Shown here: in pieces, positions 5,767-41,595 of the stretch | Layout of the letters: each line of letters opens with the position of its first letter | Numbering within the stretch: the stretch's first letter is position 1 | DNA from: Macrostomum lignano | Taxonomy: Eukaryota | Assembly: GCA_002269645.1 (NCBI GenBank) | Contig: NIVC01001746.1 | Coordinates: 178,958 to 242,957, forward strand | DNA: 64,000 nt | Reading direction: 5' to 3' | Position numbers and translations under genes: made by a program | The notes under the pieces: model-generated | What the model saw: only the letters and a program-made list of their open reading frames with translations | What the model was told of the DNA's origin: nothing | Database searches by the model: none

Positions 5767-8435
5767 CTAATAGAAGTGCAAGCTGTTCTGAGCTCTCGGA
5801 TCGTGCGAAGCTCGACGCATTCTCTTCTGTTGTTGTTGTTGCTGCTTCTGCTGTTGCTGCTGCTGCTGCTGTTGTTCTTGCAGGTGTCTGAAAGCTTCGG
5901 AAAAAACCGATCGATGCGACCGCTCCATGTCGCCGCCTCCAGCAGCTTTGCCAGTTACCCTGGACCCGTCCCCTACCCCTTCCTGACGATCGAAACCCAA
6001 CGCCGCCAGTTGGCTCTTGATTCGATTGACCAAGTCGAGCTGCGTCTGCTCCAGCGTTGGCTGATCAACCAGGCTATCCATTGCCGTAGCTGTCGGCGTT
6101 ACCGCATTTGGAGACGCAATTGTTGCGGCGCTGGGCGCAGGGGATGCGACGCTGGGCGTCGCAGCCGGAGCTGCAGCGGCCGGACGAAGGCATTCGGTCA
6201 GAGCGGCGACGCGAGCTTCCGCGTCTGTGCACTGACGCTGCAACCGTTGCAGACGCGTGCAGGCAACCTGGCAAATAGATTCAACGAATTTGGCCAGCCT
6301 CGATGGCTCATCCACTGGCGGCGGAGCCGGTGGCGCTGGCTGATCAGGCTTAGTGTCGGCAGTTTCATCGCTGTGCCGTTGCAGCTGCGCGGCGGCCGAC
6401 TTGATACTTTTGAGTGCGTCGGTTTTCTCACCCAACGACTTGCGCAGACTGGAAGTCTCCCGCTGCAGCTCGGAGACTCGACGCTCGGCTCGACGTAATC
6501 GACGATCAGTTTTGAAACTTGGATCGGATTGCTGTTGCTGCTGCTGATGCTGCTGCTGCTGCTTGGCAGCGGCCGAGGCCACACCGCTGAGATACTGGAT
6601 GCGAAATGTCAGCTTGCTGTTGGCTTGTCGAAGTCTCTCCCGTTCGGCCAGAAGCAAGCGTTCGCGTCTGTCAAATTCCGCTCGAATTCGATGTAGCTCA
6701 GAGTCGGCTTCTACTCCTCTGTGATTTGCTACAGCGATTGATGACGATGGAGGAGGCTGGGAGCTTGCCCGACTCCGTGTGTCCGACTGAGGACGACTCG
6801 GCCACTGCTGCTGTTGCAGTTGCTGAGGATGATTAGGCGTCGTTGAGGCATCCAGGCGAGATGCGGACCGGCCGAAGGTCAGGCGTTCGCGCGATACGGC
6901 ACGTCGCAGGAAGCCGCCAACTCGCTGAAGCCGGCCTCCTCCAGCTGCCTCTTGCGCTGAAGCTATTGATGTCGAAGCTGGCTGCTGCTGAGACTGCTGG
7001 TTGTTGGACGAATTGATCGACGTACGAAGTTGCTCAATCTCCATGTTCGCATCGGTGAGCTGAAAACGTTTGAGACCAGGGTCAGTGCACTTTCTCTTAA
7101 AAGAGGATAATTGAGCATGGCTAGACCCTGGAAAAAGCATGCAAAAGTTGATAATGGTGCACTATGAAATACATGTAGGACGTAAATGTACTTGTAGGTG
7201 ACCTACAAAGCTTACAAAGTTAATTGGTGCTTAAGTATCAGACAATTGGCATATTGTCAGACACTTTTTGGTACATTGTGTTGGATGCTTTTATGGTACA
7301 ACTGAACAACTTCTACGTCAATCAGGTACAATCAGACAATTCATATTTAAAAGTTTCAAAACTTTCGAAATCAACGCAAATCAATGAAAAATATTTTTAG
7401 GGTAGTTTTAATGCAAATCTCAATGAAGCTTGAAGTCGATGCTTAAACTTTTTTGTTGGCAATTCATAACAGTTGGCTGCAGGACAAAAAACGGAGTTAT
7501 TAAACTTCACTTCTCACCTGCCGTTGCAGCTCTTCGGCCCTCTTAGCCAGTTCCGCGCTCTCCGCGATTCGCTGTTGCGCCAGTTTTCGAAAGCTACGCC
7601 AAGTGGACCGGACAAAGGCGTAGTCGCTGCGCGCCGTGCTGCCCTCTGGGTAGGGCGCCGGCTCCTGCAGCCCGGCCGTCTGCAGAGCGCGCGCGTCTAA
7701 GCATCGGGTGCGTCGAATAATTCGTTCAGTATCTCTGCGCATCTTCCTAGCCATGCTTTCGTGAAGACTGTCTACCGTAGTCATCGATTCGCTTAGAGAT
7801 TGCGACTGGTCATGCTGCTGCTGCTGATGGTTTTGGTGATAAAGCTGCTGATGATGATGCTGGTGCGCTCCTCCCTGCTGCGGCTGTCGAGTTCCTCTCC
7901 GGTTCTGCTTGCCACTGGAGAACAGACCCCATCGACGTCGTTTTCGACGGCTTAGCGTTGAAGCAGCGGCTACTCCTCCGGCTGAGGTAGCCGTTGTCGA
8001 GTCAGCAGCAGCCGAGGCGGCGGTAGCGGAGACATCAGCCGAGCTGCATCGTCGAGCTTTCAGCAGCGTCAGCACCGAGGAACAGTTTCGGATTAGCGGG
8101 CACAGACTTACGTATTCTTGATCGGCAGATTTAGTGAGGATGGTGGGATAGCCCAGTCTAATGAAGTCCTGGTTAACGGTGTGCGCCATCCATTTAAACA
8201 CTTCCTCCGGCATGGCGGGTTCCGACTCGCCCTCGGCCCCCGTTCCAGTCGCTTCCGCCTTAGCAATATTTGTCGAGCCTTCGTCAGTGCTGTCATCGGC
8301 GTAGCTACCGTCTGCGCATTGATTGCCGAAGTCGCCACCGCCTCCTTCGGTGGTGCCGCCATCCGTGCCACCGGTGCTGCTGAGACTGAGCCGACTGACA
8401 CCGGTTGCGGTATTAGATAATCGACTGGTTTTCAT
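5767..8435 (-). CDS. Q/S-rich coiled-coil protein, about 736 aa, two exons (8435-7518, 7059-5767); N-terminal block weakly resembles ADIP/SSX2IP (Msd1)
   Basis: Two long ORFs join in phase 0 through donor cag|gtgaga (7517) and acceptor ttttcag|ctc (7060), giving LQRQ|LTDAN. Heptad-rich segments and polyQ runs. VNQDFIRLGYPTI...LIRNCSSVLTLL recalls the ADIP segment LDQELTTFGFPSL...VLNCMNELLVL (recognised from memory; family call low confidence). Confidence 0.7.
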
Positions 8436-10905: not shown

Positions 10906-10969
10906 ATGGCTACTCAACCTCTGCCAGCGATTCTCGTCTGCCTGTGTCTGGCCGCGGGATGTGCTGAAG
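10906..10969 (+). CDS. WSC gene exon 1: signal peptide MATQPLPAILVCLCLAAGCAE
   Basis: Hydrophobic core with small residues at the end, followed by G|gtaagc donor. Confidence 0.75.
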
Positions 10970-13900
10970 GTAAGCCTATAGAGAAAGGAAGGACTCTAAT
11001 CCATGCCTCCGTTTGCTCAGTGAAAAAAGTGAAGACTGAAAAGTCACGTTCTCGCTTAAAACATATTGCAGCACTTACTCCCCTCGGCTGCTACGTGGAC
11101 AAGGGGAGTGACAGAGACCTGCCGGTTCTCCATCATTCGTCGTCGACTACGCCCGAGTCCTGCGTGAGCCGCTGCAAATCTCAGAACTACAAGTACGCCG
11201 GTCTCCAAGCCAGTAACTGGTGCCTCTGCGGCAACTCGTACGGCAAGCACGGCAAGGCTAGCGACTCCGATTGCAAAATGGCGTGCGGCGGAGACAGCAG
11301 CAAGACCTGCGGAGGGGCCTATAGAAACGAAGTTTATCCTACTGGATTCGTTCCTGGTACGTCTTGGGACATTCGTGCTGGATTAGTCATTTGTCAGTAG
11401 CGTGCTAATTTAAGTCGTCAAGTTAGTCAAGCTCGCTTACTTTGTGTCAGTTGGGGCGAAAGAGGGCTGCTCATTCGGCATCTTTGCATTCCTTCCGCTC
11501 GTTTTCTTGATCGGTGAAGCAGTTGATTGCTTGAGAAGTAAATTAATGCTGGAGTTAGAAAGTATAAATATTGGGTTAGGGCATGCAATATTTAGGCTTA
11601 AGCTTTGCTTCACGAGCAAAATGAGATGCTGTCTAAATTAGATGCTACCTGAATCAGACTCTGGAAAAATTAGATGCCTACCTAGATAAGATGTTTGTAG
11701 TTACTGAGCGCTGGTTGTATTTTAATGGGGAGGGGGCTGCGCTGCACGCGCTTAATTGAACGTAGTGCAGAAATAAGATGTCTATGGCAACAAGCAACGG
11801 CAACGTTGTAACAAAGATGGCAGCAGGTAAAGTACAACAATGTTACCTAAATTGATGCAGCTCAGATAAGACATTGCCTTAATTGATGCTACCTAGATGA
11901 GATGTTACCTAAATTGATGCTACCTAGATGAGATGTTACCTAAATTGATGCTACCTAGATGAGATGTTACCTAAATTGATGCTACCTAGATGAGATGTTA
12001 CCTAAATGGATGCTGCCTAGATGAGAGGTTACCTAAATTGCTCACCCAGATGACAGGGTAACTAAATAAATGTCACCCAGATGTCACCCAAATTGATGCT
12101 GCCTAGATGAGATGTTACCTAAATTGATCTCACCCAGATGACAGGGTACCTAAATAAATGTCACCAGATGTCACCCAAATTGATGCTACCTAGATGAGAT
12201 GTTACCTAAATGGATGCTACCTAGATGAGAGGTTACCTAAATTGATCTCACCCAGATGACAGGGTACCTAAATAAATGTCACCAGATGTCACCCAAATTG
12301 ATGCTGCCTAGATGAGATGTCACCTAAATTGTTGCTACAAAGAAGAGACGTTACCTAAACTTGATTGGTACCTAAATGAGACTTTTCCTAAATTAGATGC
12401 TAGCTGTTCTGTTGTACGAAAGAGAATTTCAAGAGAACGAGCCTAGGGCTGTTTACGTGGGTTTGTGTCAGACGTGCACTGTAGGAACAAAGAGATTCGC
12501 TGAAATACTGTTTACAGCAGCGAAGCGCCTCGGCTGCTACGTGGACAAGGGGAGTGACAGAGACCTGCCGGTTCTCCATCATTCGTCGTCGACTACGCCC
12601 GAGTCCTGCGTGAGCCGCTGCAAATCTCAGAACTACAAGTACGCCGGTCTCCAAGCCAGTAACTGGTGCCTCTGCGGCAACTCGTACGGCAAGCACGGCA
12701 AGGCTAGCGACTCCGATTGCAAAATGGCGTGCGGCGGAGACAGCAGCAAGACCTGCGGAGGGGCCTATAGAAACGAAGTTTATCCTACTGGATTCGTTCC
12801 TGGTACGTCTTGGGACATTCGTGCTGGATTAGTCATTTGTCAGTAGCGTGCTAATTTAAGTCGTCAAGTTAGTCAAGCTCGCTTACTTTGTGTCAGTTGG
12901 GGCGAAAGAGGGCTGCTCATTCGGCATCTTTGCATTCCTTCCGCTCGTTTTCTTGATCGGTGAAGCAGTTGATTGCTTGAGAAGTAAATTAATGCTGGAG
13001 TTAGAAAGTATAAATATTGGGTTAGGGCATGCAATATTTAGGCTTAAGCTTTGCTTCACGAGCAAAATGAGATGCTGTCTAAATTAGATGCTACCTGAAT
13101 CAGACTCTGGAAAAATTAGATGCCTACCTAGATAAGATGTTTGTAGTTACTGAGCGCTGGTTGTATTTTAATGGGGAGGGGGCTGCGCTGCACGCGCTTA
13201 ATTGAACGTAGTGCAGAAATAAGATGTCTATGGCAACAAGCAACGGCAACGTTGTAACAAAGATGGCAGCAGGTAAAGTACAACAATGTTACCTAAATTG
13301 ATGCAGCTCAGATAAGACATTGCCTTAATTGATGCTACCTAGATGAGATGTTACCTAAATTGATGCTACCTAGATGAGATGTTACCTAAATTGATGCTAC
13401 CTAGATGAGATGTTACCTAAATTGATGCTACCTAGATGAGATGTTACCTAAATGGATGCTGCCTAGATGAGAGGTTACCTAAATTGCTCACCCAGATGAC
13501 AGGGTAACTAAATAAATGTCACCCAGATGTCACCCAAATTGATGCTGCCTAGATGAGATGTTACCTAAATTGATCTCACCCAGATGACAGGGTACCTAAA
13601 TAAATGTCACCAGATGTCACCCAAATTGATGCTACCTAGATGAGATGTTACCTAAATGGATGCTACCTAGATGAGAGGTTACCTAAATTGATCTCACCCA
13701 GATGACAGGGTACCTAAATAAATGTCACCAGATGTCACCCAAATTGATGCTGCCTAGATGAGATGTCACCTAAATTGTTGCTACAAAGAAGAGACGTTAC
13801 CTAAACTTGATTGGTACCTAAATGAGACTTTTCCTAAATTAGATGCTAGCTGTTCTGTTGTACGAAAGAGAATTTCAAGAGAACGAGCCTAGGGCTGTTT

Positions 13901-16900
13901 ACGTGGGTTTGTGTCAGACGTGCACTGTAGGAACAAAGAGATTCGCTGAAATACTGTTTACAGCAGCGAAGCGCCTCGGCTGCTACGTGGACAAGGGGAG
14001 TGACAGAGACCTGCCGGTTCTCCATCATTCGTCGTCGACTACGCCCGAGTCCTGCGTGAGCCGCTGCAAATCTCAGAACTACAAGTACGCCGGTCTCCAA
14101 GCCAGTAACTGGTGCCTCTGCGGCAACTCGTACGGCAAGCACGGCAAGGCTAGCGACTCCGATTGCAAAATGGCGTGCGGCGGAGACAGCAGCAAGACCT
14201 GCGGAGGGGCCTATAGAAACGAAGTTTATCCTACTGGATTCGTTCCTGGTACGTCTTGGGACATTCGTGCTGGATTAGTCATTTGTCAGTAGCGTGCTAA
14301 TTTAAGTCGTCAAGTTAGTCAAGCTCGCTTACTTTGTGTCAGTTGGGGCGAAAGAGGGCTGCTCATTCGGCATCTTTGCATTCCTTCCGCTCGTTTTCTT
14401 GATCGGTGAAGCAGTTGATTGCTTGAGAAGTAAATTAATGCTGGAGTTAGAAAGTATAAATATTGGGTTAGGGCATGCAATATTTAGGCTTAAGCTTTGC
14501 TTCACGAGCAAAATGAGATGCTGTCTAAATTAGATGCTACCTGAATCAGACTCTGGAAAAATTAGATGCCTACCTAGATAAGATGTTTGTAGTTACTGAG
14601 CGCTGGTTGTATTTTAATGGGGAGGGGGCTGCGCTGCACGCGCTTAATTGAACGTAGTGCAGAACTAAGATGTCTATGGAAACAAGCAACGGCAACGTTG
14701 TAACAAAGATGGCAGCAGGTAAAGTACAACAATGTTACCTAAATTGATGCAGCTCAGATAAGACATTGCCTTAATTGATGCTACCTAGATGAGATGTTAC
14801 CTAAATTGATGCTACCTAGATGAGATGTTACCTAAATTGATGCTACCTAGATGAGATGTTACCTAAATTGATGCTACCTAGATGAGATGTTACCTAAATT
14901 GATCTCACCCAGATGACAGGGTACCTAAATAAATGTCACCAGATGTCACCCAAATTGATGCTGCCTAGATGAGATGTCACCTAAATTGTTGCTACAAAGA
15001 AGAGACGTTACCTAAACTTGATTGGTACCTAAATGAGACTTTGCCTAAATTAGATGCTAGCTGTTCTGTTGTACGAAAGAGAATTTCAAGAGAACGAGCC
15101 TAGGGCTGTTTACGTGGGTTTGTGCCAGACGTGCACTGTAGGAACAAAGAGATTCGCTGAAATACTGTTTACAGCAGCGAAGCGCCTCGGCTGCTACGTG
15201 GACAAGGGGAGTGACAGAGACCTGCCGGTTCTCCATCATTCGTCGTCGACTACGCCCGAGTCCTGCGTGAGCCGCTGCAAATCTCAGAACTACAAGTACG
15301 CCGGTCTCCAAGCCAGTAACTGGTGCCTCTGCGGCAACTCGTACGGCAAGCACGGCAAGGCTAGCGACTCCGATTGCAAAATGGCGTGCGGCGGAGACAG
15401 CAGCAAGACCTGCGGAGGGGCCTATAGAAACGAAGTTTATCCTACTGGATTCGTTCCTGGTACGTCTTGGGACATTCGTGCTGGATTAGTCATTTGTCAG
15501 TAGCGTGCTAATTTAAGTCGTCAAGTTAGTCAAGCTCGCTTACTTTGTGTCAGTTGGGGCGAAAGAGGGCTGCTCATTCGGCATCTTTGCATTCCTTCCG
15601 CTCGTTTTCTTGATCGGTGAAGCAGTTGATTGCTTGAGAAGTAAATTAATGCTGGAGTTAGAAAGTATAAATATTGGGTTAGGGCATGCAATATTTAGGC
15701 TTAAGCTTTGCTTCACGAGCAAAATGAGATGCTGTCTAAATTAGATGCTACCTGAATCAGACTCTGGAAAAATTAGATGCCTACCTAGATAAGATGTTTG
15801 TAGTTACTGAGCGCTGGTTGTATTTTAATGGGGAGGGGGCTGCGCTGCACGCGCTTAATTGAACGTAGTGCAGAACTAAGATGTCTATGGAAACAAGCAA
15901 CGGCAACGTTGTAACAAAGATGGCAGCAGGTAAAGTACAACAATGTTACCTAAATTGATGCAGCTCAGATAAGACATTGCCTTAATTGATGCTACCTAGA
16001 TGAGATGTTACCTAAATTGATGCTACCTAGATGAGATGTTACCTAAATTGATGCTACCTAGATGAGATGTTACCTAAATTGATGCTACCTAGATGAGATG
16101 TTACCTAAATTGATGCTACCTAGGTGAGATGTTACCTAAATTGATGCTACCTAGGTGAGATGTTACCTAAATTGATGCTACCTAGATGAGATGTTACCTA
16201 AATGGATGCTACCTAGATGAGAGGTTACCTAAATTGATCTCACCCAGATGACAGGGTACCTAAATAAATGTCACCAGATGTCACCCAAATTGATGCTACC
16301 TAGATGAAATGTTACCTAAATGGATGCTACCTAGATGAGAGGTTACCTAAATTGATGCTACCTAGATGAGAGGTACCTAAATTGATCTCACCCAGATGAC
16401 AGGGTACCTAAATAAATGTCACCAGATGTCACCCAAATTGATGCTGCCTAGATGAGATGTTACCTAAATTGATGCTACCTAGATGAGAGGTACCTAAATT
16501 GATGTCACCCAAATGACAGGGTACCTAAATAAATGTCACCAGATGTCACCCAAATTGATGCTGCCTAGATGAGAGGTTACCTAAATTGATCTCACCCAGA
16601 TGACAGGGTACCTAAATAAATGTCACCAGATGTCACCCAAATTGATGCTACCTAGATGAGATGTTACCTAAATGGATGCTACCTAGATGAGAGGTTACCT
16701 AAATTGATCTCACCCAGATGACAGGGTACCTAAATAAATGTCACCAGATGTCACCCAAATTGATGCTGCCTAGATGAGATGTTACCTAAATTGATCTCAC
16801 CCAGATGACAGGGTACCTAAATAAATGTCACCAGATGTCACCCAAATTGATGCTACCTAGATGAGATGTTACCTAAATGGATGCTACCTAGATGAGAGGT

Positions 16901-19900
16901 TACCTAAATTGATCTTACCCAGATGACAGGGTACCTAAATAAATGTCACCAGATGTCACCCAAATTGATGCTACCTAGATGAAATGTTACCTAAATGGAT
17001 GCTACCTAGATGAGAGGTTACCTAAATTGATGCTACCTAGATGAGAGGTACCTAAATTGATCTCACCCAGATGACAGGGTACCTAAATAAATGTCACCAG
17101 ATGTCACCCAAATTGATGCTGCCTAGATGAGATGTTACCTAAATTGATGCTACCTAGATGAGAGGTACCTAAATTGATGTCACCCAAATGACAGGGTACC
17201 TAAATAAATGTCACCCAGATGTCACCCAAATTGATGCTGCCTAGATGAGATGTTACCTAAATTGATCTCACCCAGATGACAGGGTACCTAAATAAATGTC
17301 ACCAGATGTCACCCAAATTGATGCTACCTAGATGAGATGTTACCTAAATGGATGCTACCTAGATGAGAGGTTACCTAAATTGATCTCACCCAGATGACAG
17401 GGTACCTAAATAAATGTCACCAGATGTCACCCAAATTGATGCTGCCTAGATGAGAGGTTACCTAAATTGATCTCACCCAGATGACAGGGTACCTAAATAA
17501 ATGTCACCAGATGTCACCCAAATTGATGCTACCTAGATGAGATGTTACCTAAATGGATGCTACCTAGATGAGAGGTTACCTAAATTGATCTCACCCAGAT
17601 GACAGGGTACCTAAATAAATGTCACCAGATGTCACCCAAATTGATGCTGCCTAGATGAGATGTCACCTAAATTGTTGCTACAAAGAAGAGACGTTACCTA
17701 AACTTGATTGGTACCTAAATGAGACTTTGCCTAAATTAGATGCTAGCTGTTCTGTTGTACGAAAGAGAATTTCAAGAGAACGAGCCTAGGGCTGTTTACG
17801 TGGGTTTGTGTCAGACGTGCACTGTAGGAACAAAGAGATTCGCTGAAATACTGTTTACAGCAGCGAAGCGCCTCGGCTGCTACGTGGACAAGGGGAGTGA
17901 CAGAGACCTGCCGGTTCTCCATCATTCGTCGTCGACTACGCCCGAGTCCTGCGTGAGCCGCTGCAAATCTCAGAACTACAAGTACGCCGGTCTCCAAGCC
18001 AGTAACTGGTGCCTCTGCGGCAACTCGTACGGCAAGCACGGCAAGGCTAGCGACTCCGATTGCAAAATGGCGTGCGGCGGAGACAGCAGCAAGACCTGCG
18101 GAGGGGCCTATAGAAACGAAGTTTATCCTACTGGATTCGTTCCTGGTACGTCTTGGGACATTCGTGCTGGATTAGTCATTTGTCAGTAGCGTGCTAATTT
18201 AAGTCGTCAAGTTAGTCAAGCTCGCTTACTTTGTGTCAGTTGGGGCGAAAGAGGGCTGCTCATTCGGCATCTTTGCATTCCTTCCGCTCGTTTTCTTGAT
18301 CGGTGAAGCAGTTGATTGCTTGAGAAGTAAATTAATGCTGGAGTTAGAAAGTATAAATATTGGGTTAGGGCATGCAATATTTAGGCTTAAGCTTTGCTTC
18401 ACGAGCAAAATGAGATGCTGTCTAAATTAGATGCTACCTGAATCAGACTCTGGAAAAATTAGATGCCTACCTAGATAAGATGTTTGTAGTTACTGAGCGC
18501 TGGTTGTATTTTAATGGGGAGGGGGCTGCGCTGCACGCGCTTAATTGAACGTAGTGCAGAACTAAGATGTCTATGGAAACAAGCAACGGCAACGTTGTAA
18601 CAAAGATGGCAGCAGGTAAAGTACAACAATGTTACCTAAATTGATGCAGCTCAGATAAGACATTGCCTTAATTGATGCTACCTAGATGAGATGTTACCTA
18701 AATTGATGCTACCTAGATGAGATGTTACCTAAATTGATGCTACCTAGATGAGATGTTACCTAAATTGATGCTACCTAGATGAGATGTTACCTAAATTGAT
18801 GTTACCTAGGTGAGATGTTACCTAAATTGATGCTACCTAGATGAGATGTTACCTAAATGGATGCTACCTAGATGAGAGGTTACCTAAATTGATCTCACCC
18901 AGATGACAGGGTACCTAAATAAATGCCACCAGATGTCACCCAAATTGATGCTACCTAGATGAAATGTTACCTAAATGGATGCTACCTAGATGAGAGGTTA
19001 CCTAAATTGATGCTACCTAGATGAGAGGTACCTAAATTGATCTCACCCAGATGACAGGGTACCTAAATAAATGTCACCAGATGTCACCCAAATTGATGCT
19101 GCCTAGATGAGATGTTACCTAAATTGATGCTACCTAGATGAGAGGTACCTAAATTGATGTCACCCAAATGACAGGGTACCTAAATAAATGTCACCCAGAT
19201 GTCACCCAAATTGATGCTGCCTAGATGAGATGTTACCTAACTTGATCTCACCCAGATGACAGGGTACCTAAATAAATGTCACCAGATGTCACCCAAATTG
19301 ATGCTACCTAGATGAGATGTTACCTAAATGGATGCTACCTAGATGAGAGGTTACCTAAATTGATCTCACCCAGATGACAGGGTACCTAAATAAATGTCAC
19401 CAGATGTCACCCAAATTGATGCTACCTAGATGAGATGTTACCTAAATGGATGCTACCTAGATGAGAGGTTACCTTAATTGATCTCACCCAGATGACAGGG
19501 TACCTAAATAAATGTCACCAGATGTCACCCAAATTGATGCTACCTAGATGAGATGTTACCTAAATGGATGCTACCTAGATGAGAGGTTACCTAAATTGAT
19601 GCTACCTAGATGAGAGGTACCTAAATTGATCTCACCCAGATGACAGGGTACCTAAATAAATGTCACCAGATGTCACCCAAATTGATGCTGCCTAGATGAG
19701 ATGTTACCTAAATTGATCTCACCCAGATGACAGGGTACCTAAATAAATGTCACCAGATGTCACCCAAATTGATGCTACCTAGATGAGATGTTACCTAAAT
19801 GGATGCTACCTAGATGAGAGGTTACCTAAATTGATCTCACCCAGATGACAGGGTACCTAAGTAAATGTCACCAGATGTCACCCAAATTGATGCTGCCTAG

Positions 19901-20889
19901 ATGAGATGTTACCTAAATTGATCTCACCCAGATGACAGGGTACCTAAATAAATGTCACCAGATGTCACCCAAATTGATGCTACCTAGATGAGATGTTACC
20001 TAAATGGATGCTACCTAGATGAGAGGTTACCTAAATTGATCTCACCCAGATGACAGGGTACCTAAATAAATGTCACCAGATGTCACCCAAATTGATGCTG
20101 CCTAGATGAGATGTTACCTAAATTGATCTCACACAGATGACAGGGTACCTAAATAAATGTCACCAGATGTCAGCCAAACTGATGCTACCTAGATGAGATG
20201 TTACCTAAATGGATGCTACCTAGATGAGAGGTTACCTAAATTGATCTCACCCAGATGACAGGGTACCTAAATAAATGTCACCAGATGTCACCCAAATTGA
20301 TGCTGCCTAGATGAGATGTCACCTAAATTGTTGCTACAAAGAAGAGACATTACCTAAACTTGATTGGTACCTAAATGAGACTTTGCCTAAATTAGATGCT
20401 AGCTGTTCTGTTGTACGAAAGAGAATTTCAAGAGAACGAGCCTAGGGCTGTTTACGTGGGTTTGTGTCAGACGTGCACTGTAGGAACAAAGAGATTCGCT
20501 GAAATACTGTTTACAGCAGCGAAGCGCCTCGGCTGCTACGTGGACAAGGGGAGTGACAGAGACCTGCCGGTTCTCCATCATTCGTCGTCGACTACGCCCG
20601 AGTCCTGCGTGAGCCGCTGCAAATCTCAGAACTACAAGTACGCCGGTCTCCAAGCCAGTAACTGGTGCCTCTGCGGCAACTCGTACGGCAAGCACGGCAA
20701 GGCTAGCGACTCCGATTGCAAAATGGCGTGCGGCGGAGACAGCAGCAAGACCTGCGGAGGGGCCTATAGAAACGAAGTTTATCCTACTGGATTCGTTCCT
20801 GGTACGTCTTGGGACATTCGTGCTGGATTCGTTTGATCAGTTCTAATTTTTTTTTGCTTGAAGAGAGTCTTTATCAGAACGGTGCGTAA
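10906..20889 (+). CDS. Secreted protein with six tandem near-identical WSC carbohydrate-binding domains
   Basis: Signal exon 10906-10969 (donor gtaagc, phase 1), then six 285-nt phase 1-1 exons, each with an AG acceptor and a gtacgt donor. A short terminal exon at 20864-20889 (ESLYQNGA*) after a 62-nt intron with a T-tract is plausible but uncertain. Confidence 0.75.
11072..11356 (+). CDS. WSC exon copy 1
   Basis: LGCYVD...CVSRC...YAGLQ...CLCG...C...CGG....CGGAYRNEVY is the WSC cysteine pattern; acceptor attgcag, donor cctg|gtacgt. Confidence 0.85.
12518..12802 (+). CDS. WSC exon copy 2
   Basis: Same as copy 1 after the first ~11 nt; NAGNAG acceptor tttacagcag. Confidence 0.8.
13964..14248 (+). 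CDS. WSC exon copy 3
   Basis: Same translation as copy 2; 1446 bp downstream. Confidence 0.8.
15175..15459 (+). CDS. WSC exon copy 4
   Basis: Same translation; 1211 bp downstream of copy 3. Confidence 0.8.
17861..18145 (+). CDS. WSC exon copy 5
   Basis: Same translation; 2686 bp downstream of copy 4. Confidence 0.8.
20517..20801 (+). CDS. WSC exon copy 6
   Basis: Same translation; 2656 bp downstream of copy 5; flank diverges from the array at about 20829. Confidence 0.8.
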
Positions 20890-20997
20890 TTCGATAGTCA
20901 CTGAAAATTGAACTAAGTGTTAAATAAGCTCATATGAAATCGAAATTTTCCCAATCATCTTCCTTGAGAGCTCCTTTGACGGATGACAGTTGGTACA

Positions 20998-21122
20998 TGT
21001 GGTGTTCGTGTGGCCAAGCAATCTAAAGTTTGTCTTGGCGGTCGCGTGTATTATAAAGAATAAAATACTCTATGGTACAAGCATAGATAAATGAAATGAA
21101 CAATCAGTCTGGGGATACCACA
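20998..21122 (-). repeat. 3' LTR, with adjacent polypurine tract at 21123-21135
   Basis: 125-bp copy of 25249-25373; the minus strand reads aaaggtggaggga immediately before this LTR. Confidence 0.93.
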
Positions 21123-21142
21123 TCCCTCCACCTTTAGTAAAA

Positions 21143-24100
21143 TCAGTTCATTGTAGGGAAACGAATTGGCCTTCTCAGTACAGTCTGTGGTCGGAGTCCA
21201 CTTCTGCGCATTGTTCTTGGATCACACTGTGGTATTTCGGATGCGTCCCTCTTTTCTCGCTGACTGTCGCTCATTCCTCCTCCACCAGAAAACGTTACCA
21301 GAGCCTCGTCAGATTCTGAGTCTGGGAATATCTTTCTGGCCTTATTAACGTGACGCTTCTTGATTGTGCCACTTTTGTTCTCCAGGATCAACAGTCCTCC
21401 GACTCGCTTCCTTACGTAGTATTGCTCTGTACCAAAAAAACTATCGTACTTGTTCCTTGCTTCCCTTTCAATCACTACTGTGTCACCTGTTTTGATGTCG
21501 CAGTCACGAGCGTTCCGATTAGCGTAGTTGGACATTTTTCTTTTGTAGTCGGCGTCTTTATCTTTCTGCTTAATCAAAGGATCTATTGTCTCGTCGTTCA
21601 TTTGAGGAAGTTTTGTCCGCGCGCTCCACCGAAAGAAAAGGTTTGCTGGCGCTACGCCTGTTGCTCTCATCGGTGTTGTTCTGAAGGCGTGCAAAAAGAT
21701 TTGCAATTCCTCTTCAAAACTTGATCCATTCAAAATTCTGGATCTTCTGATGACTTTGTTCAATGTTTCATTGAATCTTTCCACCTCCCCATTTGCTGCT
21801 GGGTGACGCGGAATTATCCGAGAGTGAATGACGCCTTGACTGTTAAGGTATTCGTCAACGACTTTCGAACAGAAATTTGTTCCGTTGTCTGAGACGAGTT
21901 CTTTCATTGGTCCAAATAGTGAAATCACTTTCTTTAGAATTCGCACTACGTCGCTCGCTTCCGTGCGCTTCATGATGAACACTAGAGGAAATCTCGAGTG
22001 GTAGTCGATGAAAACTAGCAGGTTGCTACCATTCGGAAGTGGTCCTTTGAAGTCCATTGCCACTTTGTCCCACGGCTTATCCGGAATTTCCGTTGGCACA
22101 ATTGGGATCCGACTTCCTTTTTTCGTTGTGTGGATGCACACATTGCATTTCTTGCAAAAGATCTCCACGTCTTTGCTTATACCAGGCCAAAATACGGTAC
22201 TTCGCAGTCGTTCTTTGGCTTTGGAAATGCCTTGATGTCCTTCATGAGCAATTAACAGAGCTTTTGTCGCAGACTCTTCGGCAAGACAATGCGGTCTTCG
22301 TACAGGAGAATTCCATTCTGCTCCGATAGTTTATTTCTTTCTGCAAATAGTTTGTTGTGCTTTTTCCATGTTCCTCCTGATACTATTGATTCCAGTGCCT
22401 CGACAATTTCATCATCAATCGCAGAATCTTTTCGGATCTGCTCTAAGCTCAGAGCTGTGCTTACTGCGCTTTCAAGTTTGCTGTTAATGAATGCAATGTC
22501 GCGTCGATTGCAGAGTGTGTCGTTTGGTGTTTTCACCGTTTGTCTCGACAAAATATCTGCCTCGTTGGTGTCGCCTGGTTCATATTTTATCTTAAAGTTG
22601 AATGGCTGCAATCTCATTGCCCAACGCTCAATTCTTGGTGGTGGTTTTGAGTTCGATGCAAAACATCCGAGTAGAGGTTTATGATCCGTTATTACCGTAA
22701 ATTCGGCTGCTCCTTTGAGAAAGTGAGAAAATTTCTCGCATCCCCATTTAATTGCCAATGCTTCTCGCTCGATTTGACTGTATCGAGTCTCCACGTCTGT
22801 GAGAGTTCTACTGGCATAGCAAACTGGCTGTAGATTTCCATCTTTCTGCCGCTGAACCAAGATCGCACCAAGACCGACAGGACTAGCGTCTACTCGCAGC
22901 TGAGTTTCTCGCCCTGTTCCAAAGTACGCGAGCGTTTCCGTTGAGCTGATCGCTGCTTTGATGCTGTTGAAAGAATTTTCTTGTTCTGGACCCCATTCCC
23001 AGGTTTTTCCTTTCTTTGTGAGGTCATTCAGAGGCTTCGACAAGGTTGCTAGGTTTGGTACGAATCGAGCAACAAATTGTGCTAGACCAAGAAACGATTT
23101 AACTTCACTTGGATTGCACGGTGGTTTGAACATTTGAATAGCTTCCGTTTTCTTCTCGTGGATGGTTATTCCCTTCTCGGTTAGAATAAATCCCATAAAA
23201 GTAGCTTTACTCATTCCAAATTTGCATTTTTCCTTTCCAACGGTCATGCCGTTCTCCACGAGCCTTGCTAAGACCTGCTTTAGCCTGTTGTTGTGTTCCT
23301 TGACGTCCTTTCCATACACAATTATATCATCCTGAATATTCAGCAGTCCTTGTAAACCAGCCAAAACTTTTGTCATGTAGGCTTGAAGATAGAATGACGA
23401 GTTGACCCAACCCATCGGCAATCGTTTGTACCTGTACAGCGGTTGTCCAGGAATTCCTGTTGAGAACGTTGTCAGATGTCTAGATTCACTGTCTAGTTCA
23501 ATTTGATGGAACATTTTCTTGCCATCAATGTAGCTGAAGCAGCTTGCTTCTCCCATATTGGTGAGCTGATCATCCAGAGATGGGATAGGAAATTGTAGCT
23601 TTTCCGTTGCCTCGTTTAAGTTTCGTAAGTCAACGGTCAGTCGTACCTTACCAGTCTTTCCTTTTGGGACGACAACTAGCCGCGAAAGCCATGCACTGGG
23701 ACCATCAACTTTCTCTATGATTCCTGAGTTTTCCTGCTCTTCCAGTTCTTGTAGGAGTGCTTCTCTGAGATGGGCAGCTACTCTTGTTATCGATTGTGAT
23801 GTCGGCGTGCTTCCTTCCTTCAGAGCAATGGTCACTGCTGGCTGCGTGGTCAATCTACCAACTCCCTGAAATACCTCCTGATGATCTTTCAGAATTCGTT
23901 CGATTTCTTCGTTTTTCTTCTCAATCTGATTGATCGTTATCTGCAGCAAATTCAAATCGATGCTGTCTTGACATCCGAGTATTGTCTCAGCGTTGATACC
24001 GCACGTCACGATAAATTTGATTCGCTTCACTGAGTCTCCAGCCATCACAACCAGTGTTGTTGTTCCCAAGACTTCCAGCGCCTTTTTCGACATATAGGCA

Positions 24101-24438
24101 TATAGTCTTGGCTTTTCTGATCTGTTTAGGACGGTATCCTTTGACTTCACTGACTCCCACGATTTCATACTTATCAAACTTGCTGAAGATCCGGAGTCAA
24201 TGAGCACTGTACTCTCAATACCACTGATCTTCACTTTGGCTCTTGCGCCTGCTGATTCCTTCGATTCAGTCATAGCGACAGTGTTGATCTCTTCACCATT
24301 CGATTCGTCGTTGCCATTTTGCTCTTCCGGTTGCTCAGATATCTGAATATTTCTGGTTTTTATTCTGCTCCCTGTCTTTAGACATAGTCTACATGCTTGC
24401 TTGATGTGCCCTTTCTTATGGCAAAATTTGCATTCCAT
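21143..24438 (-). CDS. pol: Pol: protease, RT, RNase H, integrase; one inferred 1-nt frameshift at 22262-22265
   Basis: VLIDSGS protease; RLPMG and IQDDIIVYG RT motifs; VDASPVGLGAIL and TDHKPL RNase H; AHEGHQG...C..C zinc finger; MDFKGP, SDNG and GEVERFN integrase core. Confidence 0.93.
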
Positions 24439-25208
24439 GTTACGAGCGAAGCAATCCCAGGGACGGTGACCTGTTCTGTTGCATCTGTAGCAGACTCGAT
24501 CGCACTTGTTGGTGTTTGGAGTTGATGTCCGCTTGTCAGTCTGTTTGAACTGTAGCTTGTTATTTGGTCTGCTGTCGATTTTGCTGACTGTGTTGCGCGC
24601 CTCATTGGTTGGTTTTTCAATGTCTTTAGCCTGCGTTTTTGTTGCTTCGAAATTCTTGCTGATTTCTACTGCCTTCTTTAAGGTGAGGTCAGAGCCTTCC
24701 TTAAGCAGCAGAGTCCTTAGCGGCTTTGATGTACTCTTTAGGACTATCAGATCGCGAGCAGGCGATCCTCGAAGCTAAGCTTCACTGTACTCTCGTTTCC
24801 TCCAGGCTTGTACTCGACGTGCAAGTTGCAGTACTTTGCTGCACTTTTTAGACGACTGTAGAAGGAATCAAACGTTTCTCCCTCTATCTGGCTAACTGAC
24901 AGCAGCTTGTAAGTGTCATGGACGCTATTGGTTGCACCTTGGAATAGAGAGCTGAGCGCTTCCTTCGTTGCTTCGTAGCCTTGTTCATAGCTTACGGTTT
25001 GCAACAGCTTTCGGATTTTCGGCCCTGCTAGAAGCAAGAATGTAGCTTGCTTCTTTTCGTCGGCTATTCCTTGCACTTCCATGAACAGCTCGACTTCCTG
25101 CACATACTCGTTCCACTTATCTGCATTGTTGAGCGGATCTTCGTCTGGATCGAAATGCCCAATGCTGTAGAACTGTGCTGAGGCCATCCTGCGAGGTATT
25201 TTCTCCAT
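24400..25208 (-). CDS. gag: Gag with two CCHC knuckles, one inferred 1-nt frameshift near 24755
   Basis: ORF 24747-25208 continues in another frame as DLIVLKSTSKPLRTLLLKEGSDLTLKKAV...CYRCNRTGHRPWDC...CKFCHKKGHIKQAC, which is in frame with pol. Confidence 0.85.
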
Positions 25209-25233
25209 AGTACATCCGTAGCTTTTCTCTTTT

Positions 25234-25247
25234 CACCGCTGCCACCA
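25234..25247 (-). promoter_or_regulatory. Primer binding site TGGTGGCAGCGGTG (tRNA-Leu-like)
   Basis: Lies 1 nt inside the 5' LTR boundary and is complementary to the ...CACCGCUGCCACCA 3' end of eukaryotic tRNA-Leu(AAG/UAG). Confidence 0.8.
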
Positions 25248-25248
25248 A

Positions 25249-25373
25249 TGTGGTGTTCGTGTGGCCAAGCAATCTAAAGTTTCTCTTGGCGGTCGCGTGT
25301 ATTATAAAGAATAGAATACTCTATGGTACAAGCATAGATAAATGAAATGAACAATCAGTCTGGGGATACCACA
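25249..25373 (-). repeat. 5' LTR
   Basis: 125-bp TG...CA repeat followed on the minus strand by the PBS. Confidence 0.93.
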
Positions 25374-25909
25374 GTACATTAATGATTTTGTTGTCATTTT
25401 TGTTACGTAAAGACGCAATAGTTTGGCAGTTTAGCCCACGTCTGTTGGGTAGCAATGCTATTAGTAGAGAATATATCGCGATTGCCCAATCTGATCATTT
25501 CCGAATCAATTGCAGGTCAGTAAAAAGTACGCCGAGAACAGAAATTCAGTCTGGTGATGGAGAAATTAACAATATTAATGAACTATTGCTGATCAGACAG
25601 CCGCAGTCTTAACACAATTTTCCTTGATACTCCATTTTCCTTTCAAATGGTGTGTGGGCAATTTAAATTGAGAAGCCTATAATTGTCGTCGACCAGAATG
25701 GAATTTCTTGGAGCAGCTTATTTATTCAGTTTAATTTTTAATATATTTTTCTTCAGCACTATAAAATCGTACAGTGTTCCATAGCTCTTATTTATTTCAC
25801 CAATGAGCGCACACGGGGTTGTAGGCTAGTGGTAGAGCGTGAGTGTGCGTGTGAGTGTGTGTGTTGTAGCCCAGTCACGTCGGTGGGCCGCGGTGTTAGG
25901 CCGATCAGC

Positions 25910-26117
25910 AGAGCCTCTACTGAAGCGTTCGACCAAAAACCAGGTCGATTTGTCTGAACAGTATAAAAATCGAGGGGCGAATTGAAACGCTAATTTTATC
26001 ATTAATATAGCTGCATAAGTTAGAACTACGAATCAATGGATTTTCTAGAGGTTTGTACCCCAGGGCCGGCCTGCAGTCTTATCCGAATGGCGATGAATTT
26101 TTGTCTTCAATTTTTTG
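25910..26117 (+). repeat. Dispersed ~200-bp repeat, copy 2
   Basis: Similar to 10258-10456, same orientation, ending gtcttcaattttttg. Confidence 0.7.
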
Positions 26118-27583
26118 CTTTAAATGGCTCTGTGAGAAACTTGTTGCAAACTAAAGTGAGAAGTCGTGTAATGGTGTTGATATAGTCAAGCTTTTTACCA
26201 CGGTCTGACGTACATGTTCACGTAGATGATATGTCAAGTTATACATATAATGCTGGTGTACATAGCGATTGGAGGCAATTCCAGTCAAACGGTGACAAGA
26301 CGTACGCGATCCTAGCGAACAATGTACAAATGGACACTGTCAAGTACATTTAGTTGAGCAGCTGAGTGCACCACGTTCAGTTTTACAGCGTGGGTGGCCC
26401 ACACAGCGGGAGTGGCCCACACTCAGTGATCGAAAAAAATTGGAAAAAGTTTCCTTTTATTCACAGTACTACAGTTATACTCCAGTGCTGTAAATATGTA
26501 CACCTTGTCGCCGAATTGTCTGTCTCTGATTCGACTGTCGCCGGATCGTCTTGTCGCCGATTTGACCGGTTCCCTTGATCCACCGATCGGATATATAGTG
26601 ATTTGTTATGTAATTATTATTAACGAATCCACGTATTATATGTTTTTTAGCTTTTTTGCCGAGATAGCTATATTTTATTGCCTGGCATAATTAATCTTTA
26701 TCTATATTTTTTGTTATACTTTTGTTATTTGTTTATTTCTGACTTTCTTTAATTAATTTGAACTCACATGATGTGGGATGTGCATGCATGCAGGCACGAT
26801 ATACGTGTTGGTATTTCGCGGCCCGGCTCGGCCAGCTGCAGTCCGGGCCGGGCCGCAATTTTATCACTTAATAAAACAATTTAGATAAATTTTGTTAATT
26901 TAGAATTTTTTTAGGCATGTGACACACAAATGTAGTAAGATTTTTTTAAGCTTTAGGTAGTAAGACTCTAGAATATAGACTTACAACTAAGAACTTTTTA
27001 CTTGTGTTGTTTTGTGCTTGTATAATACAAAAGCAGCTTGTAAATAGTTACATAATTTATATCTTACCTGTATTGTCTACAGATCTACAACTCTTTTTTA
27101 TTTAGTTATGTTTAGTTAGTTAGTTTATTTTGTATTTTATTTTCTTTGGAAATGCTGTCTGCAGAAAAGTTCCTGCACTAGGCCCTATATTAATGTATTA
27201 TTGCAAACCGAGTCGCAGTGTCAGCCTACTGAAACTCTATATAGCACAATCTTAAAGTTTTCACATTCCTTGTGTTTACAATCACCCCAAACAGAAACAG
27301 TGACAATCACCTTTAATAACAGTGACGATCACCACAAAAAACAGTTGTAAGACATAAATCCAGAGTTTCTAATGAAAGGAAATCAAATATTGGCAAACTG
27401 ACTTTGTTTATTTCAAAAGATGGTATCAAGATTGTCGTAGTACTTTATACTTCACCTTCAATTTATAGTCACCCAAATGTATATTGCCTATTTAAATGAT
27501 CGCGAACCAAAGCTAGCAGTGCCAGTAGGAAAGACTGTCAAACTAATTTCAATTGTCAAGTCACAAGTTTGAGCTATGGTAGC

Positions 27584-28513
27584 TAGGGATTCCAATCCCG
27601 GGATCCCAGGATCCCGGGATTGGGGCCAAAAATCCAGGATTTGAATCCTGGGATTTTTTTTGGGAATCGAATCCCAGGATTCTTAATCCCGGGATTGCAA
27701 AAGTCCGGGATCGGGATCCCGCGATTTCAAGGCCTTAATCCCGGGATTGGTCCGGGATTAGAACAACCTTTCAGTGCCTAAATTAGATAATTTAAAGTCT
27801 AAACGTTTATTTGAATAATAAAACATTTATTTGTTTTTGCTGTTTCTCAATGAAACGTTAAACATTTGCAAAGCTCCTGTCCTAATTGAGCCAAAAATTG
27901 TTAATGTGAACTGTAAATGATAGATAATTTTAACTTTTTTTCGTTTTCCACCACGAGACAAGACTGAGGGCCTTTTCATATTGCTTGTTCTGGTTCCAGA
28001 ACCAGAACCAATTTGTGAAGTATAACTTTTTGTCTCCATAACTAGAGGGAGATACGTGCTATAAAGTTTTTATTATTGAATGACAATCGCCAAGAAGAAA
28101 GTGAAAAATCGTGCAAAGTGAGGCTGTTAAGGCAGTCAAATATTAACAGAGTTTAAGTGTTTAATAGTTATACTGCTGTTTTTCTTGGAATTCTGAACCG
28201 ATTCTGGTTCTGGAATTGGTAATATGAAAAGGCCCTGTGACTCTGAGAGTCGCAAGACCATGACTACTGCACGCGGCACGCCGCACAATCCATAGGGATT
28301 CCAATCCCGGGATCCTGGGATCTTGGGATTGGGGCCAAAAATCCGGGATTTGAATCCCAGGATTTTTTTGGGAATCAAATCCTGGGATTTTTAATCCCGG
28401 GATTGCAAAAGCACCGGGATTCCGGGATTTTGAATCCTGGGATTTCAACAGCATTGGGATTTTGGGACTATTCAATCCTGGGATTGTAAAATGTCGGGAT
28501 TTTGGAATCCCTA
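27584..28513. mobile_element. Compound non-autonomous hAT-like element with a duplicated left end
   Basis: TIR tagggattcca at 27584 and again at 28293; right TIR tggaatcccta ends at 28513; exact 8-bp TSD atggtagc at 27576-27583 and 28514-28521; many atcccgggat subterminal motifs. Confidence 0.85.
27967..28236. mobile_element. Small nested MITE (possibly PIF/Harbinger-like)
   Basis: 16-bp TIR agggccttttcatatt / aatatgaaaaggccct with inverted ttctggttc/gaaccagaa subterminal motifs; TSD imperfect. Confidence 0.55.
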
Positions 28514-28989
28514 ATGGTAGCCTATATTTCATATTCAGTTTACAATTACCCAAACATAGCCTATGTTGCCCATTAAATGATTGCGAACCAAAGCTAGGCC
28601 TAGCCATAAGAAAGTGTACTAAGGGTTGATATGCTTTCTTATAGCCAGGTTTGGTTCACAATTATTTCAATAGAATGCATGTATAGAAGTGATCATAAAC
28701 CAAAAGTGAGGGGGGTGCAGCACTAAATATTAATTAAGCCTATACCAAGGCACCAAGCTAGGGTTGATATGCTTTCCAACAACCAGCTTTGGTTCATAAT
28801 CATTTTAATGAGACATGAACATTTGGATGATCATAAAGCAAAGGTGATATATAAGCTACTAGTGAACTGATGTACAATCCTTTTAATTTCAAATTAACAA
28901 AGTTAGTTGATCAACCAACTTTTGCTGTCTTTTCATTTGAAACTACCGTCGGTTTTTATGTTTTAGTTTTGAACACTCCATTTTTGCAT

Positions 28990-29383
28990 CAAAGAGCTTG
29001 CGTGCACGGCCGCCATTCACATAAGCTCAGAATTGCGTGCATGACAGATCTAATATCTTATAGGCTTATACAGTAAGTCATATACTATTCGAATTAATAT
29101 TCAAATTAACAAAAAACAATGAATTAAGATTACATTTGCAGTCCATGGTGTACGGGGGATAAAACATTATAAAACTATGTAGAAAAAATATTTTTTAATT
29201 AGGTTTGCCAATGCCAATGCGTGGATTTAAGGGCCCCAGTCCCGGCCAATTGCCGGCTGCCGTGCACGCAATTACAACACTAGGTGGACGGCTGCACACA
29301 TGCAAATAAAGCACTAGGTAGATAGCCACCATGCACGCAATTCTGAGCTTACGTGAATGGCTGCCGTGCACGCAAGCTCTTCG
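28990..29383. mobile_element. MITE with 9-bp TSD (Mutator-like)
   Basis: About 54-bp TIRs (28990-29043 vs 29330-29383); 9-bp direct repeat tttttgcat at 28981-28989 and 29384-29392. Confidence 0.8.
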
Positions 29384-29681
29384 TTTTTGCATTGCAATAA
29401 GGAAATATAAGGTGATCATAAACCAAAACTGGAAAAATAAAAAGTGAAATAAACCAAAACTGGCAAAATAGATGGTGATCGTAAACCAAAGCCCAAAGGA
29501 TTGCCAAAGTTTATAGGACAAAACTGTTTCAATCTTATTGAAATTTCTTAGGTTGCTACACAAGTACTTGCAAGAATGTGCAAGATCTTTGCTATAATAA
29601 TACCTAGGTAAACTTATCAGCTCTTGGCAACTTGCTACATCATACAACATCTTATCTCAACCACTCAACCACTCAACCACT

Positions 29682-30492
29682 CAAACCACTCAACCAAATG
29701 ATACCAAACTTTACACCCACCCTAAACTTACTACAGAGAATGTCTTAGGCTACTTTTAAATTTCCTAGACTCAAGTCTTCCTACCTAAAAGTACAAAAAA
29801 CTGCTCAATGCAGCAAATAACTTCCATGATTAGCGGAAGCTTTATTATTAGTTTATTGTAAACTTTCTGTATTGTATATCTATTTTCACAACTGTACAGT
29901 AGACAGTAAAGTTAAATAAATAAGACAATGACATCATTTTTAGTAATCCTTACAAATTTATAGTACTAAATAAGATTTAAAATTTAGTATGTATAAATTT
30001 AAATAAATAAAATTATCTATGTGTTACATTATATCACATGATTTGGCAAATTAAGGTAAAACAATATTGATCAAGCAATAGAGCGCATTAAAACAAAATG
30101 GCAATTGTGAGCAAATTAAAGTACAAAGAAATATAAAGCAATTGGGTATGTTAATTGTGTTTGCATGATAGTAGCAGGGGACAAAGCAAAGTTCAGTTCC
30201 TTAAACAACAAGATACTTTTGAAAACTGTATCTAAAATGTTAATAATGAGATGGCATATTTATATTTTTAGATATATTTAGTATTTTAAATATAAGTAAT
30301 ATATCTCTATGTATAAAAGTCAAAACTCTGTCTGTGTGTGTACAATTTTGATTGCTATGGACTCCCAAACCACTCAACCAAATGATACCAAACTTTACAC
30401 CCACCCTAAACTTACTACAGAGAATGTCTTAGGCTACTTTTAAATTTCCTAGACTCAAGTCTTCCTACCTAAAAGTACAAAAAACTGCTCAA
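29682..30492. repeat. Two apparently identical ~127-bp direct repeats (29682-29808, 30366-30492)
   Basis: caaaccactcaaccaaatgatacc...gtacaaaaaactgctcaa occurs twice, separated by ~557 bp of AT-rich DNA. Confidence 0.85.
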
Positions 30493-31349: not shown

Positions 31350-32450
<1,101 letters not shown>

Positions 32451-39368: not shown

Positions 39369-39464
39369 ACCAAAAAAATAATTATTGTTTATGACTTAGC
39401 GAATATATATTGATTTGTGTTTTACATTCAGCTGTTATGCTCATTTTTGGGATGATTAATTGCA

Positions 39465-39815
39465 ATTGTCTATGGCTTTTATAAGTCTGTAGTTAATTGC
39501 AATTGTCTATGGCTTTTATAAGTCTGTAGTTAATTGCAATTGTCTATGGCTTTTATAAGTCTGTAGTTAATTGCAATTGTCTATGGCTTTTATAAGTCTG
39601 TAGTTAATTGCAATTGTCTATGGCTTTTATAAGTCTGTAGTTAATTGCAATTGTCTATGGCTTTTATAAGTCTGTAGTTAATTGCAATTGTCTATGGCTT
39701 TTATAAGTCTGTAAATAATTGCAATTGTCTATGGATTTTATAAGTCTGTAGTTAATTGCAATTGTCTATGGCTTTTATAAGTCTGTCTGTAATGAATTGC
39801 AATTGTCTGTGGCTT
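39465..39815. repeat. 37-bp tandem repeat
   Basis: Unit gttaattgcaattgtctatggcttttataagtctgta; period checked at 39481/39518. Confidence 0.9.
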
Positions 39816-41265: not shown

Positions 41266-41595
41266 ATAGGAGTAAACAAAAAATGTTCATGCCTTCAAAG
41301 TCGTTGAAAAGTCACTTCTGCACCTTAATTTTGATTAACTATAAGCGTTTAATGTGAAAAATTATTTTATATAAATATATATTTCACTTGCTTGTAATTT
41401 TGAATTAATCAGTCATCTTATAAATATAGTTTGCGTAGTTAAACAGTCAACGATTCTATTTATAATTACATCCATGCTTATTTAATTGTATCAGATAGTT
41501 TGATTTTTTGTGTTTTTTTGTATTTCTTGAGTCGCGTATCAAAGCTGCTAATTTCTAAAACAAAAACACAAACTCAACTAAAGTTTAGAAATTGG

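Follow-up and report, generated by a model that had tools for sequence, protein, structure and literature searches.

The window analyzed here, a 64,000-nucleotide (nt) stretch of Macrostomum lignano contig NIVC01001746.1 (positions 178,958 to 242,957, forward strand; assembly GCA_002269645.1), contains a gene in which a signal-peptide-like exon is followed by six exons that each encode one WSC domain. The six-fold repeat is a very young tandem amplification of whole exon-plus-intron units of 1.2–2.7 kb. On balance, we lean towards the view that the locus is a member of the expanded, secreted, WSC-only family just after intragenic tandem amplification, and that it would encode a 602-amino acid (aa), six-WSC glandular binder of glycans or glycoproteins.

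Repeat finding revealed a 300-nt segment in six copies, spaced by 1446, 1446, 1211, 2686 and 2656 nt. The repeated units are near-identical and in tandem, each comprises an exon and an intron, and the reading frame is kept throughout. WSC exon copies 2–6 are identical at 285 of 285 positions, and copy 1 deviates from them only at exon positions 3, 4, 5, 7, 8 and 10. Outside an intronic minisatellite, the units are ∼99.7–100% identical: they differ at 0–2 of the first 520 intron positions and at 0–2 of the final 200, and between units 1 and 2 there is full identity over 1436 nt, i.e., everything past the first ten nt. The first-pass annotation of this DNA had described the exons as homogenized, since they look identical even at synonymous sites. 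That description does not hold, because the non-minisatellite introns are equally identical (0–2 differences per 520 nt). With introns as identical as exons, identity at synonymous sites reflects the youth of a segmental duplication of whole units rather than exon-directed homogenization.

The few substitutions that separate the units are nested. Alignment columns 701 and 716 split units 1 and 2 from units 3, 4 and 5, and units 4 and 5 have a minisatellite expansion in common, the pattern expected from successive real duplications. The differences in intron length (1161, 1161, 926, 2401 and 2371 nt between the WSC exons) stem entirely from minisatellite copy-number changes: unit 3 is missing ∼240 nt of minisatellite, and an insertion of ∼1240 nt is common to units 4 and 5. 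This minisatellite had been proposed as an abundant recombination substrate. It is indeed unstable, having changed length at least twice although the units differ by ∼0.3% at most outside it, but it is not needed for that role: the substrate for changes in copy number is the 1.2–2.7 kb unit itself.

Both edges of the array are sharp. Its first position, 11082, lies 10 nt into copy 1, and its last, 20829, lies 28 nt beyond the copy 6 donor (first mismatch at 20830); outside either edge, alignment scores did not exceed those of shuffled controls. No unit copies were found in the window outside 10.9–20.8 kb, nor did the intron of the sixth unit resume past the retrotransposon that lies downstream of the gene. 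The 1.1-kb intron spacer was also considered as a transposon; this was unsupported, and no other copy of the spacer was present in the window.

The array consists of five units plus 303 nt, and this non-integer number points to an ancestor of the form A-spacer-A, i.e., two 303-nt WSC bodies with an intron between them. The copies at the two edges have acceptors of their own, ttgcag/CACTTACTCC in copy 1 and tttacag/CAGCGAAGCG in copies 2–6, which coincide in position and phase, so that the ancestor would already have had two genuine WSC exons. We infer the following order of events. The ancestor most likely had a signal-peptide exon followed by two WSC exons, the first internal and phase 1-1, the second terminal, as does the M. 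lignano paralog Mlig020547g1, and its two WSC bodies would have had an identical 303-nt stretch in common. Unequal crossing-over would have occurred between these direct repeats and later between whole units. As the outcome, copy 1 would retain its own acceptor and first 10 nt, the other acceptor with its 10 nt would be present in copies 2–6, copy 6 would keep its own 3′ flank, and the internal copies would be hybrids, with a 5′ end from the second exon and an intron from the first. One contraction (unit 3) and one expansion (in the ancestor of units 4 and 5) of the minisatellite would have followed.

By analogy, the locus is mechanistically equivalent to the kringle IV-2 (KIV-2) repeat of human LPA (PMC4378929). 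There, too, near-identical tandem units of exon(s) and intron each add an in-frame, disulfide-rich domain to a secreted protein, with little variation between units (PMC4378929, PMC11515395). In contrast, the LPA unit is 5.5 kb long, contains two exons and shows documented copy-number variation in the population (PMC4378929, PMC11515395), whereas the M. lignano array has one exon per unit and six copies, and is known here from one assembled locus.

The gene is coding-competent as a signal peptide followed by six WSC domains in a WSC-only reading frame, as the first-pass annotation had it, and the exon coordinates, phases and splice sites given there proved correct, as did its range of intron lengths (926–2401 nt) on re-measurement. 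Exon 1 comprises 64 nt (21 codons plus 1) and thus ends in phase 1; at 285 nt (95 codons) each, the WSC exons are all phase 1-1. The frame would therefore survive unequal exchange or the skipping of an exon, again in line with what had been proposed, and variability in copy number would be plausible. The splice sites of all six WSC exons are intact, with pyrimidine-rich (t)ttacag/ttgcag acceptors and the donor CCTG/gtacgt; these sites are consensus-like, and no frameshift or stop interrupts any of the six. The GC content of the exons (58–59%, with 72% at third codon positions) vs. 41% in the introns is coding-like. Exon 1 has a hydrophobic core, AILVCLCLAAG, and residues 5–20 reach 2.5–2.8 in 11-residue Kyte-Doolittle means. 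Intron 1 is in frame and stop-free, so that its retention would insert 34 aa behind the signal peptide and leave the protein unbroken. Opposite the WSC exon, open reading frames (ORFs) of 98 aa recur on the minus strand in every unit; they were rejected as genes, the simplest view being that they are by-products of the GC-rich WSC exon.

The domain assignment of the first-pass annotation was also borne out. A test construct with two domains (exon 1, the first two WSC copies and the tail) matched the Pfam WSC profile PF01822 at 135.2 bits (gathering cut-off 27.8; E 9.3e-40) over profile positions 2–82 of 82. An alignment with M. lignano paralogs showed eight invariant cysteines (C6, C30, C34, C50, C52, C67, C71 and C79), and the RDLP, CGN and CGG motifs were likewise conserved. 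WSC is a PAN/Apple-type module with eight conserved cysteines, which form four disulfides in the Wsc1 and Kremen1 structures (PMC9024836); the Kremen1 WSC chains in the PDB match the window domain by sequence (E 1.7e-14).

Past copy 6, read-through of the donor would give GTSWDIRAGFV, followed by TGA at 20834–20836, and the sequence downstream is unique. In the paralogs the last WSC exon is terminal, which fits this read-through; the terminal WSC exon of Mlig020547g1 has its stop five codons past the TTG motif. The plus-strand ORFs downstream of copy 6 are short and non-coding in appearance. If the donors of copies 1–5 are all spliced, the predicted product would be a secreted chain of 602 aa, with six identical disulfide-rich WSC/PAN-type modules joined by linkers of ∼8 residues.

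A profile search with one WSC exon matched 7817 proteins, and the best 150 of these 7817 bear 2–23 WSC stretches each. Among these best 150, the closest relatives are secreted multi-WSC proteins of M. lignano itself, with 44–50% identity and 2 to 13 domains. They include Mlig020547g1 (signal peptide, ESKPPKA repeat, two WSC domains), Mlig005509g3 (signal peptide, 13 WSC domains; its 90% cluster spans 365–1223 aa plus a 52-aa fragment), A0A1I8JE00 (13 WSC stretches) and A0A1I8J1D5 (three WSC stretches with a repeated non-WSC segment between them).

Mlig020547g1 (PAA94460.1 / A0A267H817) is secreted, and its domain is 49% identical to the window WSC domain. Its signal-peptide exon ends in phase 1, its first WSC domain occupies a phase 1-1 exon of 288 nt, and its second WSC exon is terminal; apart from a low-complexity repeat, it is WSC-only. 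Unlike the copies in the window, however, its two WSC domains are ∼50% identical to each other, and thus old duplicates; exon 1 carries the ESKPPKA coding repeat, and there is no young amplification of units. Mlig005509g3 (PAA83643.1 / A0A267GC98) is likewise a secreted, WSC-only, multi-domain chain, with phase 1-1 WSC exons of 294–297 nt and a satellite array in an intron. Its domains are diverged, with 31–58% identity to the window domain in 12 tblastn matches, so that its expansion is ancient, whereas the window array is 99.7–100% identical, introns included. The old WSC exon duplicates of the paralogs are 30–50% identical and have not been homogenized.

Two side observations concern these loci. 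Exon 1 of Mlig020547g1 (NIVC01000010.1, positions 6100–6397 of the fetched locus) contains ESKPPKA as a 21-nt coding minisatellite with more copies in the genome than in the deposited 282-aa protein, which the locus does not encode as it stands. A second secreted WSC protein thus has a coding repeat of variable length. At Mlig005509g3 (NIVC01000412.1, positions 14070–30250 of the fetched locus), a tandem-repeat array of ∼16 kb with ∼85% self-identity fills one intron, and the deposited protein is not exactly translated from the locus.

In line with the family layout, the signal-peptide exon of the window gene ends in phase 1, its symmetric phase 1-1 exons hold a single WSC each, and its last WSC exon is read as terminal. 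These data show that (i) one WSC per symmetric exon, a terminal last WSC exon and intronic repeats are the standard design of the family, of which the window gene is a young six-copy instance; and (ii) the architecture, protein, domain and mechanism are not new, secreted multi-WSC proteins being very common and several of them being already annotated in M. lignano.

A number of observations weigh against a six-domain secreted product. The AlphaFold model is weak, with a predicted local distance difference test score of 65 from a 7-sequence alignment, and Foldseek found nothing below E 6.9 in the PDB. The putative signal peptide has no basic n-region. Because the donor of copy 6 is intact, a further downstream exon may exist. 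No protein more than ∼51% identical to the window WSC was found among the best 150 of the 7817 profile matches; a word-indexed protein search with the two-WSC construct for an annotated product of the locus returned only one 48%-identical JGI protein, and an exact look-up of ORF 10906–11400 gave nothing on record. The locus is thus without annotation support, even though the UniProt proteome of M. lignano includes the genes on both sides. Between the stop and the retrotransposon (161 nt), no canonical AATAAA polyadenylation [poly(A)] signal was found, and the first on the plus strand lies inside the long terminal repeat (LTR), at 21059. The minisatellite contains 3, 3, 1, 13 and 12 AATAAA hexamers in the successive introns, and these could truncate transcripts. 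RNA815_80.4, a prostate WSC protein discussed below, shares only 31% identity with the window domain over 52 aa (N-terminal 101 aa compared), and so is a different gene. Finally, the Mlig_3_7 assembly is, at ∼700 Mb, larger than the estimated 500 Mb, and M. lignano has been described as having “improperly collapsed or expanded haplovariants” (PMC10733133).

There is an unlikely, yet serious, chance that the array is real and that a hexa-WSC protein is not expressed from it, either because the gene is silent or decaying since the retrotransposon inserted near its 3′ end, or because its transcripts end early through donor read-through or intronic polyadenylation, which would leave copies 2–6 mostly as orphan pseudo-exons. 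The protein is missing from both public M. lignano annotations, in which the neighboring genes are present, and an LTR element lies 161 nt past the stop. Each internal donor, if read through, meets a stop after 14 codons (in copies 1–5 at GTSWDIRAGLVICQ, ending in GLVICQ). The lack of a canonical poly(A) signal, the intronic AATAAA hexamers (1–13 per intron) and the read-through stops make truncated transcripts a real possibility. However, all six exons are intact, even if the copies are so young that their intactness says little about selection. Moreover, repeat-rich loci are often missed by assemblies and annotations, and paralogs with long, satellite-filled introns are expressed and annotated.

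It is also rather unlikely that the array is an artefact of assembly, the true locus having fewer units (e.g., two or three) that were over-expanded, or chained from different paralogous or allelic versions of the locus (about three). The M. lignano genome is neopolyploid, most regions being present in three paralogous copies, and the units fall into three length classes (1446, 1211 and ∼2670 nt), which matches this predominant three-copy structure; the identity of units 1 and 2 over 1436 nt and the excess assembly size point the same way. Against this, the 303-nt common segment is too short to mislead long-read overlap, and the same intron occurs twice in succession, in units 1 and 2, which is impossible from a two-exon locus and implies at least three copies in one haplotype. 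The variants among units are nested, not random, and the clean array edges are bordered by intact unique flanks on both sides.

Exon-directed concerted evolution, in which selection and gene conversion would keep old duplicate exons identical while the introns evolve freely, could account for the identity of the exons at all sites, synonymous ones included, and for the 303-nt identity of two edge copies with unrelated outer flanks as one conversion tract; it is nevertheless very improbable and already contradicted, since the exons are not markedly more similar than the non-minisatellite introns, units 1 and 2 are identical throughout, introns differ in length by minisatellite copy number only, and old WSC exon duplicates in the paralogs have not been homogenized.

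For the reading that we favor, recent amplification of a secreted WSC-only gene, known M. lignano proteins suggest a role. RNA815_80.4, with a signal peptide and two WSC domains, is prostate-specific by in situ hybridization, and its knock-down abolishes prostate antibody staining (PMC4490696). Of the 76 prostate-limited Mlig-pro transcripts, a large proportion match WSC proteins (PMC5977470 Table S1), and knock-down of the WSCD2-like Mlig-pro46 lowered the paternity share gained as the second mate (P2) (PMC6953679). These prostate-limited seminal-fluid candidates (RNA815_80.4, Mlig-pro46 and several other Mlig-pro) resemble the window gene in combining a signal peptide with WSC in M. lignano (PMC4490696, PMC5977470, PMC6953679); they differ in that their transcripts measure 0.7–1.4 kb, so that about 2–3 domains can be encoded. 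By analogy with these transcripts and with SiWSC3 (below), the window product would most likely bind glycans or glycoproteins multivalently as part of a gland's secretion, seminal fluid being the leading candidate.

Multivalency has a precedent in the lectin SiWSC3 of Serendipita indica, the functional analog nearest to the predicted product, which, as summarized in PMC9024836 (citing Wawra et al. 2019), is secreted, consists of three WSC domains only and binds long beta-1,3-glucans; its binding reportedly requires the domains to act together (PMC9024836). As far as that account goes, SiWSC3 is similar to the predicted product in being secreted and built solely of tandem WSC domains. It is, however, a fungal cell-wall component with three diverged domains, and beta-glucan binding by the flatworm protein is not implied. 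Carbohydrate binding by the window WSC would follow by analogy with SiWSC3 and ThCrd2 (PMC9024836); it need not hold, since in Kremen the WSC domain is engaged in complexes between proteins. Going by family resemblance, the product would best be viewed as a multivalent, lectin-like constituent of a gland secretion, most likely that of the prostate.

The coordinates of the gene, the array and the other features of the window are collected in Table 1.

Table 1. Features of the 64-kb M. lignano window (position 1 is the first nucleotide of the window).
Feature	Position	Strand	Description
Exon 1	10906–10969	+	ATG and signal-peptide-like segment MATQPLPAILVCLCLAAGCAE; 64 nt; donor aag/gtaagc at 10969/10970
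Intron 1	10970–11071	+	102 nt, multiple of three, stop-free; ORF 10906–11400 continuous across it
WSC exon copy 1	11072–11356	+	285 nt, phase 1-1; own 5′ end CACTTACTCC encoding A-L-T-P
WSC exon copy 2	12518–12802	+	5′ end CAGCGAAGCG encoding A-A-K-R, same as copies 3–6
WSC exon copy 3	13964–14248	+	285 nt, phase 1-1
WSC exon copy 4	15175–15459	+	285 nt, phase 1-1
WSC exon copy 5	17861–18145	+	285 nt, phase 1-1
WSC exon copy 6 (terminal exon as read)	20517–20836	+	285-nt body 20517–20801, then donor read-through to stop
Tandem array	11082–20829	+	Five full exon-plus-intron units (1446, 1446, 1211, 2686, 2656 nt) and final 303 nt
Intronic minisatellite, intron 2	11840–12402		31-nt consensus ATGTTACCTAAATTGATGCTACCTAGATGAG; higher-order periods 87/118/205 nt
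Minisatellite, other intron arrays	13286–13848, 14732–15059, 15943–17745, 18629–20401		Same 31-nt repeat
Antisense ORFs opposite WSC exon	12400–12696, 13846–14142, 15057–15353, 17743–18039, 20399–20695	−	98 aa
Presumed 3′ untranslated region remnant	20837–20997	+	Up to retrotransposon insertion; only AATAAG, at 20923
LTR retrotransposon	20998–25373	−	Ty3/gypsy-type reverse transcriptase, RNase H and integrase ORFs; ∼4.4 kb, compact
Retrotransposon ORF, gag-like	24747–25208
Retrotransposon ORF, protease/reverse transcriptase/RNase H	22252–24438
Retrotransposon ORF, integrase	21143–22168
Two glutamine-rich (Q-rich) ORFs	5767–8435	−	Long, GC-rich; 457 and 311 aa; no Pfam match
Multi-Ig-domain gene	∼47200–54833	−	I-set/Ig_3 domains, exons of ∼300 aa
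23-mer repeat	34577–35768		51 copies
18-mer repeat	36495–37469		54 copies
26-mer repeat	42160–42843		25 copies
21-mer repeat	45078–45956		42 copies
(AATC)n	50357–50920		Simple repeat
(TCTCC)n	61778–63080		Simple repeat

The retrotransposon has inserted probably into the 3′ untranslated region of the WSC gene. Its two 125-nt LTRs differ by 2 mismatches, and the insertion is bordered by a target-site duplication of 5 bp (GTACA) at 20993–20997 and 25374–25378. An Rfam scan of the whole window gave no matches.

The two Q-rich ORFs upstream probably belong to one gene, transcribed divergently from the WSC gene. Part of it, the ORF at 7500–8435 (minus strand), matches M. lignano A0A1I8H2D2 with 99% identity over 48% of the ORF; A0A1I8H2D2 is annotated as “Calponin-homology domain-containing protein”, with A0A1I8GU12 as a paralog. 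Within the multi-Ig-domain gene on the other side, the ORF at 52380–52841 (minus strand) matches M. lignano A0A1I8IJ19 with 100% identity over 154 aa. The N-terminal 104 aa of A0A1I8IJ19 match 53099–53440 at only 89%, with gaps, and this mismatch suggests that the genome versions differ in annotation or assembly.

Minisatellites and simple repeats are very dense at 31800–50920 and 60400–64000 of the window, and for this reason the minisatellite in the WSC introns is unexceptional for the M. lignano genome. These repeats account for the strong GC/AT skews and give rise to spurious long ORFs on either strand (e.g., 36429–37596).

For Macrostomum research, the locus provides an unannotated candidate for the WSC-rich prostate and seminal-fluid repertoire, with a valency that could vary between lines, and it marks a spot where assembly copy number calls for care. 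That the array is at once real, prostate-expressed and copy-number polymorphic between M. lignano lines and subgenome copies is quite improbable; if true, it would be an LPA-KIV-2-like “valency dial” on a seminal-fluid lectin, in which the number of WSC domains would affect sperm competition or partner manipulation, and sexual selection via intragenic copy-number variation would be directly measurable. If real and expressed, the array would capture cleanly, prior to divergence, how a domain repeat grows when a symmetric exon and its intron undergo unequal crossing-over, and the older, diverged products of the same process, with 2 to 13 WSC domains, would be available in the same genome for comparison.

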